DNA of 64,000 nt from Auanema rhodensis (taxonomy: Eukaryota; Animalia; Nematoda), in assembly GCA_964057225.1 (NCBI GenBank), contig OZ059896.1, positions 9,734,001 through 9,798,000 on the forward strand, in the 5' to 3' direction. Positions 50,173 to 59,334 of the stretch are shown here, in pieces (positions within the stretch are counted from its first letter, which is position 1; the number at the start of each line of letters is the position of its first letter). The notes beneath the pieces are model-generated. The model was not told the origin of the DNA, searched no databases, and saw only the letters and a program-made list of their open reading frames with translations. The position numbers and the translations under genes are program-made.

Positions 50173-53100
50173 CTACATCTTCGATTTAAGTATATTCAAA
50201 GCACCCTCATTCACATCGGTCATATCATATCTAAAATAATTTTATATTTAAACCAAAAAATTATGAAGAAACACTTACGATTCGTCGCTGTTTGTTGTAT
50301 ATGCTGCACTAACAGGACCTTTTGGAGGTTGATAATCTTCTTCATATACAGAACCATTCTGAATTATATAGTTAGATATAGAAGTTTTGACATATTTTCA
50401 TTACCAAATGTTTCCTTGTAACAAGATGTTTTTTATCTAAAACATATAGAACTTCATTTGCAGCTCGTAAGCCACTTTCTACAGCTCCGCTCATATAGCC
50501 CATCCATTCCAGAGCTGTCTCAGTTCCGGCAAAATGAACACTGAATACCAGCACATTAGGACAACTACATAATAATCTATTAACAAACCTGCAATGTGGT
50601 TGACGAATTGTGGCAAAAGCATCCATGTTTCCTGGAGTGACAGCAACAGTTGGACATCCACCATTGAACGGTTCATGTACCCACAACTAAAAATAAAGAA
50701 GATGAATCAGTATAAATCCTTCAATCATCTAAATTGCACTACCTTTTCTACATAGTCAATCATCTGAGTACGGCATTTAATACCGAAGAAGCGTTCCAAA
50801 TCTTTGAGTATTGCTTCTTTTCGCTCAATTAGAGACATGTCTGAACAAAAACAATTGTAGAAAAGCTTAAACATTACTCTTTTACCTGTAAACTCTTCAT
50901 TGATGAAACCAACAAGAGCAGGAGCTCCACGTGAAGAACAAGCATCATAAACTTCGATAAGTGGGAGTATCTTGAAAACAAAACATTATATTTATCTATG
51001 TATGGTATAAATAAATAGTTTCTGCAAGTTGTATATTGTGATGATCAGCATGGTTATTGAGGAACAGCAAAAAGAGATGAGATAGTTGCTACAATTCGAG
51101 TTATTTCTAGGTTTTTTACTTTGCAAAATGAACTAATTAAGATTTTTGTTGGCTTACTTGTGGGAACATCTTGGAGAATTTTGAAACGTCTACAAGACAA
51201 AACGAAATATACAATTTTCGTTATTTTTTTATTTTTTCATATAATATTATTTCATTTGTTTGAATTGACATGATTTCAAAAAAAAATTAAAGCATTTTTT
51301 GTATTATAATAAATGAATATATATAAATATATCTGAATTTGATTAATGTATAAACCAATTTATCTTAGAAAAAAGAAAGATTATCTGATACGTCATGATG
51401 AATAACAGATAAATTCAAAAATTAAACGAATATCTTATTATTCAGATTTAGATATTATCCAGATATATAGTTTTAAATAAAGAAACACCAAAATAATTAT
51501 TCTAAATAGACACAATTTTTATATTTTTTGAAAACATTGAACTCAATTATCTTTTTCATTTTCAAAAAAAAAATGTTTAAGAACATTGATGAATGTGTTA
51601 ATTTTAAATTTTTTAGTAGAATGTATTATATAATTATATTTAAAAAGGTAATATAGCTTACTTCTCCTGCACTAGAAGTTCTACCAGTACTGATAATTTC
51701 ACCGGAAAATCCATCTTCTCTCCAGAAAGGCGTTTCATATGTTATAATAAACTTAATAAAGTTTCCAACAGGACATGATTCAAACAATCGACTCTATAAA
51801 ATGGTTCAATTAACACAGATCTTTCTCAAGAGATAAACTATAATATTTTATCTATATTTATATAAACAAATAATTACCTTTATCAATGGAACATCTGGTT
51901 TAAATTGAATATAGTCACATTGATTTGGAGGAATTGCTAAAATTACCCGACGACAGTGGAAATATTCATACTGAAATAGAGAAACTTTGTTTTTTTTTTC
52001 CCGAAAAATAGTACATACAACATCTTTTTCACGCGGTAAAGTGCTGTAGGCATGAAGTAATGTCAAGCCCGTTTTTTCATCATAAATAATCTCATCAACT
52101 GCTCGATTCAACAGTATATTTTCCATTCCAAATTCTTTTGCCATGATTTCACACATTTGTTGAGTTCCATCCTAGGAAAAAATTGCTTTTTTACCATGTT
52201 TTTCAAAAAAATTTTTATTTATTTTTTAAATTTTTTCTCCCGGAAATAAAATACGTAGGTATATTTTCAATATTTTCTATGACATCAATACCTCCACACG
52301 GACAGCTTGTGCTCCATCGCCGATATTGTTAACAAGACAACTGAATGTACCAGCAGCTTTTGAAAAAGCCAAATGATAGAGCATATTCACACTAAAATAG
52401 ATTCATTAAAATTTGTTTTTATGTTTTATCTATCGGTATTACCGATTAGGCTTCACTCCATATATAGCTGTCGTCTTCAAGTCCATACAATCGTGTGATG
52501 TACGCGTTATACAATTCTCTTGGCACCATTTCTCCAGCGTCATTCCATCGTAATTAATGGCATCCTTCCAAGAGAAAGGATCTTTCAAATCAAGCTTAAA
52601 ATAATAATTATTAATATTATTTATAACATCATTCTCTTTGATTATTCTAATATTAATTAACAAACTTGGCACTTTCAGTACTTATAATAAAAATATTGAA
52701 ATTATTAAAATAAACTTGTTCGAAATTATAAAATTCACAAAGAGATTGCCTATTTTTTCAATTTTTAATGTATGGGAGAGACGAACAATTACTATGATTG
52801 AGCGAAATTTAGCAAAAAAGCTTATGATCAAACTACAAAGTTTATTAAGTTCTTCAAGTTTAGTTTAATTCTGAGATTATATGCATAATAATTTTATTAA
52901 TTGAACAATCTCCAGTACCTGTTTAACCAGTTTTTCTGTTTTCGTTAAACTAGCATACCAGTCGATCACCTCTATAGGTGTAAATTGCCTGAAACAATAT
53001 AATCAGTTATACATATCTTATTTGATTTCTTATTTGATATTTGTAATTATATGTTATATTTTATTTGAACATACTGTAATGATGTTATTGGCAAACTTCC

Positions 53101-53564
53101 GGAATATTGACGAGGTTCTGGTGTTCCTATTTGAGCCCATTTAGTACCATTTTCATATTGTTCATATGTCTTAAGGCCTAGTTCTTTTATCAGTTGATTG
53201 ATATGGCGCTGTGTGTGGCCAACCCATTGTCCTAGAGAAAGGAGAATCAGTGCCGTTCGTTGACTGAAGAAAACTAACCACCAAGATCAAATCGAACATT
53301 CTTTTTACCGGGTCCAAGAATAGGTACAGTCAGAGTACGACCTCCCACACGATCTTTAGCTTCAATCACGAGGATCTGAACAAAAAAAAATAACATAAGT
53401 TGAAAACAGGTTTACTATTTGATTGATAAGAAAATGTTATGATTTATGAAATTTACCTTAAGATTTGGATCTTTCTTCCGCAATTCTCTGACAGCAGAGA
53501 GTCCGGCTAGTCCTGCTCCTACTACAATGACGTCGTAGTCTTGGGGTGCTTCCTGAGAAGACAT
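50173..53564 (-). CDS. Flavin-containing monoamine-oxidase-like amine oxidase
   Basis: FAD-binding DVIVVGAGLAGLSA...IEAKDRVGGRT...FDLG/GQWVGHTQ; VILAIPP; YETPFWREDGFSG; WVHEPFNGGCP; HFAGTETALEWMGYMSGAVESGLRAANEV; ends LNILKSKM*. Confidence 0.93.
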
Positions 53565-54184
53565 GTCGACAGAGTTTCATATGGATTGAAACCTGAAAAA
53601 TGATCATGCTTTTCATATAACAATTACAAGAAGTTTCATTATGATAGCTAAAGCTTAAAGCATATTGAAAGATCTAGAAGTAAAATAAATAAGCTAACTA
53701 TAATTGAATAGTCTAGGCAGTCTAAGCAGTCTAGTCAGCTAATTATTATTAAATTTTCACAATTATCTCCAAATGTACGGCAGGGTTTTGGTAGAAATTA
53801 GTAGAATGACTGGTAGTTTTAGCTTTTTAGCTTAGGCTTTATATAACATTGAGATTGTTTATGAGAGGAATCAGTGATAATGTTATGACAAGAGAGTATA
53901 TGGAGAGAGAGAAAAGACTGTCAACGATAAGGAAAAGCCATTAAACGATGAAAGTGACAAACAAGGTGTGCCTATGAACATATAAAGAATAGTGAAGATA
54001 CCTAAAGAAAAAAAAGAAATTTGAAACAAATTGAAGAACCGGGCATATGAATCGGAAGAAATAGCATATGTACGATGGAGATAAAGAAAATGTGGAAAAA
54101 GAGATTCCTTAAGAGGTAGAGAAAGAAGAAATATGTGTATAGAGAGAAAAATAAAGGGAAAAAGGTGAAGATAAACAGGGTGGC

Positions 54185-57500: not shown

Positions 57501-58381
57501 TGTGGTAGCCATTAACACGTTTAAATTTAGAATTTATTCCAGCAATAAATTTGTTCTTTTATACTTTATTTGGATAAATTATACGATTTTCATAGAAAAA
57601 AAAAACTTTTATCAGTTTTATATATCATTTTATATGAAATTCATGTGCACGTTACACTTCATCTCTATTGTTAAATGAATTTCATATCAAAAAGAAGAAG
57701 ATATTATCGGTAGAGTTCAAGAGATTCCGTCCATGCTTTCATATCATTGTTTCTAATACATGTTTCATTTATATTTTTTTTCTCTTCATCAACAAGTTTC
57801 AGTCTGAAATTTTATTTTTTAAAATCAAAGTTCAATTGTTAAGATATTATAAGAGTAAAAGTTATTTAATTAATAAAAATCAGTATAAACTAATGTACTT
57901 AACACATTAATGTTCAGTCGTAAATTCACAAAAATAAATAAAAAGTGAGATATTATTCACTTGTAATCATTCATATCAAATTAACTCAAAAGGAGTGCCT
58001 ATTGTTAAAAACAAAAGTTTCAGACAAATTCTTAACACGGTGTGAAGGTCGTCAATCCGACACAGAGTCGAGGACGGAAAAATGATCACGAGAAGTTCAT
58101 TTCTATAATTCCGGAGATATTAAATCAACTTAACCCCGCCTACTTTGTTTAGATCTGATATCAATTATATAAGAACCAACTATTGTTTGGTCAAAAACCT
58201 TAAACGTATCGTCCGAAGAAGTTCGTACAATTTTTAAAATATTTCGAAGTATTATAACAACTTTCATCAATTCATATCATCCTAGTTTGATAATTGTCAT
58301 TAAATATTTTAAATTGAAATCCTCTACTCTTTATATTACTATGATTAGTTAATTTGTATTTATGATTTCTCGATTTCAGAA

Positions 58382-59334
58382 ATGTATATCACCGTAAATC
58401 GTGTGGAGAATGATGTCTACATTCGAGGTGCTACTGTTGATGATTCTGAACTAGTCATACAAACTTTGATAAAGTCTATTACTACTGATGAACCTGTGTG
58501 TCGCTCGCTTGGAATATCAGAATCAGACGCTGAAATATTCTACCGTGGTATACTCATTTCTAGAAAATTTGAAAAACAAATTTAATTAAAGGTTATGTAC
58601 CAAAAACTCTTTCTGCTGGAGTTTCAGCAATTGCTTTTGAAGGTGATCAAATAATGGGAATACTTTTAAGTGATGTGAAGCAACGGTAGGACATTGAATA
58701 GTTAATATTATTTTCATTAACTATTATTATTTAGTGGAGACGTATTATATAATGAAGATCCTAGTACATATTCCGGAAGAGGAATGAAAGTATTATGTCA
58801 ATTACTTTATCATTTAACTAATGATGTAATGAAATTACCAAACTTTCCTCAGCAGTTTACTTACGTTAATTTTTAGTTTTGGAAAGAAATGCCTCCTGCT
58901 GTAGTGACCATAGTGCATGCACTTGATATTTGGGTCCATCCTTCAAAGTGAGCAAAAGAAGATCATTATATTATTTTATATCAAAGAAAAGATTATTTAC
59001 AATCTGAGTTTAGAAGACGTTCCTTGACACAAGATCTTGTTCATCATAGTATGAGATTCTATTCGTCATTTAAAGCTGATGCTATTGTAGCCGAATTTTT
59101 AAATTCATCTAGAAAGGTTCATTTCAATTCTTTTTACCATCAAGTATATTTTTTTTCCAATCATTTCAGATTATATTTTCAACTGGATTTTTCCGAATGA
59201 AAGTCATTGAACATGACAAGCTGAAAGATGAAAATGGACAACGATTGATCAATTGTCCAACAGAAAATAGTTCGTGTTTAGGTGTAGCATTCTTTCAGCC
59301 GACGTTCGCAACACCTCTTCGTTCAAGAATTTAG
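58382..59334 (+). CDS. GNAT acyltransferase, insect/nematode arylalkylamine N-acetyltransferase (AANAT)-like, 6 exons
   Basis: tttcag|aaATG; IRGATVDDSELVIQTLIKSITTDEPVCRSLG (DEP motif), SAIAFEGDQIMGILL, IWVHPS, AIVAE...STGFFRMKVIEHDKLKDENGQRLINC; ends TPLRSRI*. Family assigned from recalled motifs. Confidence 0.78.

Follow-up and report, generated by a model that had tools for sequence, protein, structure and literature searches.

We analysed a 64,000-nucleotide stretch of the nematode Auanema rhodensis (the window, part of contig OZ059896.1), which contains on its minus strand a gene for a flavin amine oxidase of the monoamine oxidase (MAO) A/B type. The predicted protein ends in -SKM, a candidate peroxisomal targeting signal type 1 (PTS1) that is retained in related species, and has no membrane anchor at its C-terminus. 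A second, smaller gene lies upstream of the oxidase and is transcribed in the opposite direction. A first-pass annotation had described the two genes as a peroxisomal amine-processing module, consisting of a MAO-like oxidase and an AANAT-like acyltransferase next to an array of chemoreceptors. Part of this description is supported, namely the MAO identity of the oxidase and its candidate PTS1; the AANAT identity of the second gene, the conserved linkage of the two genes, their co-regulation and the connection to the chemoreceptors are not. Overall, we consider it reasonably probable that these are two neighbouring genes that are functionally unlinked, and that the oxidase would reach peroxisomes via its PTS1.

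The family of the oxidase was determined by searching exon by exon. The Pfam family Amino_oxidase (PF01593) matches the exons colinearly, with positions 18-36, 45-86, 274-313 and 413-443 of the model corresponding to exons 2, 3, 9 and 13, in this order. Exon 13 by itself scores 30.1 bits, compared with a Pfam cut-off of 19.8 bits. Exon 1 encodes VVGAGLAGL, the GxGxxG motif of flavin adenine dinucleotide (FAD) binding, and matches models of the FAD/NAD Rossmann fold. The best solved relatives of exons 12 and 13 are rat MAO-A (E = 2e-11) and human MAO-B (E = 6e-11), bacterial and fungal amine oxidases being weaker matches. The 16 residues translated from intron 12 are properly gapped in the alignment to MAO-A and MAO-B. 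The Pfam matches and the two vertebrate enzymes as closest solved relatives, in preference to polyamine, L-amino-acid or bacterial amine oxidases, support the proposal that the oxidase is MAO-like.

The alignment also places the catalytic residues. The cysteine of NGGCPT in exon 12 is aligned to SGGCYT of MAO-B and corresponds to Cys397, to which FAD is covalently linked as 8-alpha-S-cysteinyl FAD. The tyrosine of GYMSGA corresponds to Tyr435 and the lysine of FIKF, which is aligned to VIKC, to Lys296. At the position of Tyr398 the oxidase has a proline, and the aromatic cage of two tyrosines is incomplete. NGGCPT with the proline in place of Tyr398 is common to the oxidase and to its orthologue on a contig from a related species (L001, about 8850-8900). 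The exchange suggests a substrate range that would differ from that of vertebrate MAO. We take the predicted protein, a putative FAD enzyme of the MAO-A/B type, to be this nematode lineage's counterpart by orthology of animal monoamine oxidase.

The oxidase gene starts with an ATG at 53564 and ends with a stop codon at 50175-50173. The coding sequence of 1617 nt yields a protein of 538 amino acids with the C-terminus DVNEGALNILKSKM, the final residues being NILKSKM. This end fits the consensus [SAC][KRH][LM] and has a lysine at position -4. According to the hydropathy profile the oxidase carries no C-terminal transmembrane tail anchor: the maximum over 19 residues is 0.66 in the last 90 amino acids, compared with 2.08 in an anchored homologue (P0007).

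Orthologous loci came from a word search whose query ran without a stop codon through exon 12, intron 12 and exon 13; it returned short gene calls from other assemblies, and their contigs were then fetched. Relative to the exon-sized query, this search covers protein lengths of 0.55-1.75 times, a range that excludes full-length nematode MAOs including AMX-2 of Caenorhabditis elegans. The loci are L001 (a Logan contig of 9430 nt), L003 (from ENA, 99% identical to L001 at the DNA level) and L002, which stems from a further species. Local tblastn with the oxidase model identified the orthologue with 62-94% identity per block. In L001/L003 the tail is encoded by one exon (L001 9158-9298) and reads NGSVYEDGYEPPCVPVTSAAYEDFNGTGLSLTEVNEEALELLKSKL; in L002 it is likewise a single exon, ending in TEVNEEALELLKSKL. 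Both tails terminate in EVNEEALELLKSKL, with LELLKSKL as the final residues. The join of the small exons 14 and 15 in the window is independently supported because the same tail is a single uninterrupted exon in these two related species.

Among the three species, the tripeptide is -SKL in L001/L003 and L002 and -SKM in the window, while the rest of the tail drifts (approximately 54% identity overall). The question whether orthologues keep the PTS1 can thus be answered with yes for L001/L003 and L002, within this sample of three species, and the proposal that -SKM is a PTS1 gains support from its retention as -SKL while the remaining tail diverges. At the extreme C-terminus, the two related species have what would be a canonical PTS1, and the window has a variant that fits the consensus. 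A partial protein of Pristionchus mayeri is a more distant match to the oxidase (52% identity).

Further MAO-like sequences were seen in the course of these searches. In the P. mayeri locus L004 (GCA_036245805.1, BTRK01000006.1, 140-12430), incomplete MAO-like copies lie in tandem; there are at least three of them, and some may be pseudogenes. The MAO-like fragments P0007 and P0008, from other organisms in ENA, have a C-terminal transmembrane helix. Another fragment, P0010 (L005 1567-1827), ends in -ARL directly after the FAD domain.

We regard a peroxisomal MAO as rather likely, because the PTS1 is conserved as -SKL or -SKM and the membrane anchor is absent. The most likely form of this is a predicted enzyme that is either peroxisomal or both cytosolic and peroxisomal, with an altered aromatic cage. 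The PTS1 receptor PEX5 (PRX-5) would bring the oxidase into the matrix of the peroxisome, though maybe just a fraction of it, -SKM being the weaker signal. There, the oxidase would act on amines by deamination and release aldehyde, ammonia and hydrogen peroxide (H2O2), beside peroxisomal catalase.

A different explanation for the same tail is that the oxidase is cytosolic or otherwise bound to mitochondria, and that SK[LM] is kept for a reason unrelated to peroxisomes, for instance because it belongs to a conserved C-terminal helix (EVNEEALELLKSKL) with a role in oligomerisation or in contact with a membrane. Conservation indeed extends beyond the tripeptide to a block of approximately 15 final residues, and -SKM is a weak signal. 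Nevertheless, the extreme end matches the canonical PTS1 in L001/L003 and L002 and fits the consensus in the window, a hydrophobic anchor is missing, and what defines PEX5 cargo is just such a block that ends exactly in SKL. AMX-2 of C. elegans has been called mitochondrial, by analogy only (PMC4433219). Weighing these points, we think it unlikely that the tail serves this other purpose, and prefer import into peroxisomes.

The second gene was examined with exon-level queries in both the family and the database searches; exon-sized queries are weak, and joined models were compared locally only. With E values up to 10, none of the six exons matched a Pfam family, GNAT (PF00583 and relatives) included. 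Exons 1, 2, 3, 5 and 6 gave no real match in the PDB; WD40 structures that were matched by exon 6 turned out to be artefacts of summing over repeats and were discarded. A word search with exon 6 revealed no relative, and a HMMER search with exon 1 against 1.84 billion representative proteins returned just four repeat-protein artefacts. Two metagenome scans contained no relative either, and local tblastn detected no paralogue in the window. In the ESM Atlas, exon 6 yielded nothing, and exon 1 was placed first with an AstA cluster of the GNAT clan (0.90) and then with an Acetyltransf_4 cluster (0.86), with 128 shared features, which is a lead only. An AANAT-like identity of this gene is therefore not borne out by Pfam, PDB, word-search, HMMER or metagenome matches, the weak Atlas hint being what is left of it.

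Two features of the predicted protein also bear on the proposed function. The pyrophosphate loop for acetyl-CoA (motif A) has the consensus Q/RxxGxG/A; at its expected position, which was placed by eye from the layout and not from a family alignment, the protein has KRRSLT, a sequence free of glycine. The C-terminal -SRI has an isoleucine at position -1, which is outside the strict metazoan PTS1 consensus, and is preceded by an arginine at position -4. Neither of the two genes matched itself in the searches, and the protein collections apparently do not contain the proteins of this species. The lack of relatives would accordingly mark the small gene as fast-evolving or poorly sampled, and not necessarily as an orphan. 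We picture its product as a small, fast-evolving, lineage-restricted protein that would be at most loosely GNAT-like, with an -SRI end that is most likely a coincidence and at best a weak signal.

In the window the two genes form a divergent pair with start codons at 53564 and 58382 and no recognisable gene between them, as had been described. Likewise, both GT-AG gene models reproduce the C-termini LKSKM and LRSRI. The conservation of this arrangement was assessed with L001, a contig on which 7.2 kb of sequence precede the start codon of the oxidase. Using the small-gene model as query, tblastn found no match in these 7.2 kb, and tblastx of the L001 upstream DNA against the whole window detected no translated similarity, the spacer between the two genes included. 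The upstream stretch of L001 carries an SH2-like open reading frame (ORF) and an Srh-like fragment instead. The idea that relatives keep the head-to-head linkage finds no support in this comparison with one relative. The same contig contains at 1276-2139 a 287-amino-acid ORF that consists nearly completely of valine and glycine (a GTT/GTG-type repeat), most likely a gene-calling artefact in simple sequence.

The spacer contains no notable ORF, no tRNA and no Rfam match. An (AG)n microsatellite with approximately 160 copies is located in it at 54188-54503; this repeat yields long artefactual ORFs rich in SL or RE on both strands. With 4817 nt, the spacer resembles the 4-5 kb spacing of neighbouring genes, the three genes downstream of the oxidase included. 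The divergent arrangement over 4.8 kb does not look like a compact bidirectional promoter and would be ordinary gene spacing and not a co-regulated module, and a shared promoter, as had been envisaged, finds no support in start codons lying this far apart.

The coincidence of two PTS1-like ends can be put into numbers. In a six-frame translation of the window, [SAC][KRH][LMI] fits 0.46% of the tripeptides that precede a stop codon. By our estimate, chance alone would give a genome approximately 0.3 pairs of adjacent genes in which each member fits this pattern; finding one such pair among thousands of scanned windows is thus not surprising. The pairing of the two genes is probably a coincidence.

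A functional pair would require that both proteins are imported by PRX-5 and act jointly in amine oxidation and in N-acylation with peroxisomal acyl-CoA, co-regulated from a shared upstream region and possibly feeding signalling metabolites. The two C-termini do have the same composition of a basic residue, S, [KR] and a hydrophobic residue, the PTS1 of the oxidase is conserved in relatives, exon 1 of the small gene shows weak features of the GNAT clan, and for a given pair a chance match of both ends is rare (approximately 2e-5). In addition, genes of the iaaNAT type have been reported from nematodes, in C. elegans and Ancylostoma according to a review (PMC4394704), and such a gene would fit in a nematode. 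Against this stand the missing assignment of the small gene to an acyltransferase family, the glycine-free KRRSLT where the acetyl-CoA loop is expected, the position of -SRI outside the strict metazoan consensus, the absence of the linkage in L001 and a spacer of 4.8 kb that is no compact bidirectional promoter. Taking both sides together, we judge a module of this kind to be quite improbable. It is very doubtful that this nematode lineage has relocated both arms of amine inactivation to peroxisomes, with the MAO orthologue (-SK[LM]) and a lineage-specific GNAT-like N-acyltransferase (-SRI) as PRX-5 cargo. Equally doubtful is the corresponding biochemical scheme, in which the two would draw on peroxisomal H2O2 handling and acyl-CoA pools and convert amines of biogenic or dietary origin to aldehydes, to acids and to N-acyl amines, products that may act as signals. 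We consider it very improbable that the small gene is wrongly modelled or does not code for a protein, and that its -SRI is meaningless, although neither the search of 1.84 billion representative proteins nor the other searches revealed a relative, given six exons in frame, GT-AG introns of 44-66 nt as is typical of this genome, a GC content of 0.36 in exons and 0.23 in introns, TTTCAG directly before the ATG, AATAAA approximately 80 nt after the stop codon and an ESM Atlas recognition value of exon 1 that is within the range of real protein families.

Several points weigh against two unlinked genes with a peroxisomal oxidase. The conservation of the PTS1 was seen in a sample of three species, and the linkage comparison covers one relative and 7.2 kb. 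As a PTS1, -SKM is weaker than -SKL, so that the oxidase may be largely cytosolic; the weak -SKM is used by human soluble epoxide hydrolase. Among the tandem copies of P. mayeri L004, whose gene models and tails are provisional, one downstream frame ends in LLRCSSRL, a possible PTS1 on which we do not rely. In the small gene, the arginine at position -4 before SRI would suit a PTS1, and the hint from the ESM Atlas is to the GNAT clan. Judged by eye, the small gene has a layout similar to that of Drosophila Dat, an N-terminal DEP motif followed by strand-helix-strand, which is a lead only. Exon-level searches being weak, the small gene could still be a true relative of GNAT or iaaNAT proteins. 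Having considered these points, we retain two unlinked neighbours, with a probably peroxisomal oxidase, as the preferred reading.

The coordinates of both genes and of the surrounding features are listed below. The window is AT-rich, with a GC content of 0.19-0.39 in windows of 2 kb, and has the short introns and TTTCAG-type acceptors of a nematode. Exons have a GC content of 0.40 in the oxidase and 0.36 in the small gene, compared with 0.22-0.23 in introns, which is a coding signal. An AATAAA is located downstream of both stop codons, at a distance of approximately 65 nt in the oxidase and 80 nt in the small gene. The ATG of the small gene at 58382 is found immediately 3′ of a TTTCAG acceptor, and its stop codon at 59332-59334 follows the C-terminus FATPLRSRI. 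Four sequencing runs from one study, of uncertain type, contain 0.23-0.25 of the words, a value that fits equally with transcripts of both genes and with low-coverage DNA.

Features of the window, with the exons of each gene listed from first to last
Feature	Position	Strand	Remarks
Oxidase gene, MAO-A/B-type flavin amine oxidase	50173-53564	minus	15 exons, all introns GT-AG
Oxidase exons 1-5	53564-53457, 53375-53279, 53231-53075, 52988-52919, 52594-52443	minus	
Oxidase exons 6-10	52391-52292, 52171-52019, 51970-51878, 51793-51662, 50970-50886	minus	
Oxidase exons 11-15	50840-50743, 50686-50589, 50540-50405, 50358-50279, 50230-50173	minus	
Oxidase exon 12, NGGCPT	50589-50686	minus	HMMER alignment to MAO-A and MAO-B chains
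Oxidase exons 14 and 15, C-terminal tail NGSVYEEDYQPPKGPVSAAYTTNSDESYDMTDVNEGALNILKSKM with PTS1-like SKM	50173-50358	minus	no hydrophobic anchor
Spacer between the start codons	53565-58381		4817 nt, GC 0.25, AT-rich
Small gene	58382-59334	plus	6 exons, GT-AG introns of 44-66 nt, 229 amino acids; family unconfirmed, possibly GNAT-like
Small gene exons	58382-58547, 58592-58685, 58735-58825, 58877-58947, 59014-59116, 59170-59334	plus	
Three paralogous multi-exon 7TM-like genes in tandem	about 49300-48027, 45886-43838, 39019-38016	minus	downstream of the oxidase

Just 5′ of the oxidase start codon, at 53565-53590 on the minus strand (L001 7168-7193), the window and L001/L003 agree in 24 of 26 nt. 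Within this block an out-of-frame ATG precedes the main ATG by 17 nt, and the block is itself preceded closely by a TTTCAG acceptor; the DNA further upstream cannot be aligned with L001/L003. The 26 nt could represent a leader that is conserved, or an upstream ORF that overlaps the coding sequence.

Tandem arrays of chemoreceptor-like genes are common in nematode genomes. Downstream of the oxidase, three paralogous genes with the character of seven-transmembrane (7TM) proteins were found where the first-pass annotation had described three Srx-like receptors; Pfam recognised none of their exon pieces, and the Srx identity is unconfirmed. Nothing ties the array to the oxidase, and its proposed role as a linked sensing arm is not supported.

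Animal MAO is known from textbooks as an enzyme that a tail anchor attaches to the outer mitochondrial membrane; in vertebrate MAO this transmembrane anchor follows the FAD domain. The oxidase shares with MAO-A and MAO-B (1O5W, rat MAO-A; 1GOS, human MAO-B) the FAD fold, the GxGxxG motif and the equivalents of Lys296, Cys397 and Tyr435, and differs from them in the lack of the tail anchor, the SK[LM] end and the proline in place of Tyr398. A similar combination is present in MAO-N of Aspergillus niger (PDB 2VVM, among the matches), a peroxisomal flavin amine oxidase ending in -ARL: both are soluble MAO-family enzymes with a C-terminal PTS1 and without a membrane anchor. MAO-N is a much more distant match (E = 5e-4, compared with 2e-11 for MAO-A) and binds FAD non-covalently, unlike the oxidase, which retains the cysteine for covalent FAD. 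A PTS1-bearing MAO has reportedly also been discussed for Guillardia theta. A peroxisomal MAO is already known as a solution outside animals.

With the insect-type arylalkylamine N-acetyltransferases (iaaNAT, Drosophila Dat), members of the GNAT superfamily, the small gene has in common a similar size (approximately 230 amino acids) and the weak hint to the GNAT clan; it differs from them in an additional C-terminal tail of approximately 11 residues ending in SRI and in the glycine-free loop. In mammals, polyamine back-conversion uses a GNAT N-acetyltransferase, SSAT, which is cytosolic, together with PAOX, a peroxisomal flavin amine oxidase that bears a PTS1 and belongs to the same Pfam family as the oxidase of the window. 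A polyamine pair of the SSAT/PAOX kind was ruled out for the window: the oxidase is of the MAO type and not of the PAOX/SMOX type, and nothing links the two genes.

The intestine is a tissue rich in peroxisomes. The nematode MAO orthologue AMX-2 (B0019.1) of C. elegans converts serotonin to 5-hydroxyindoleacetic acid and has its highest expression there (PMC4433219). Our searches of open PMC papers and bioRxiv preprints revealed no description of a nematode MAO in peroxisomes.

A module of two genes would be the more striking result, but the evidence does not carry it; the solid result is the MAO with a PTS1. The exchange of Tyr398 for proline raises the question of its substrate range. If the reading is true, the anchor-free nematode MAO with its conserved -SKL or -SKM would put amine catabolism and the resulting H2O2 into peroxisomes. 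The labels given in databases would then need to be checked, as would models of how worms turn over serotonin and dopamine.

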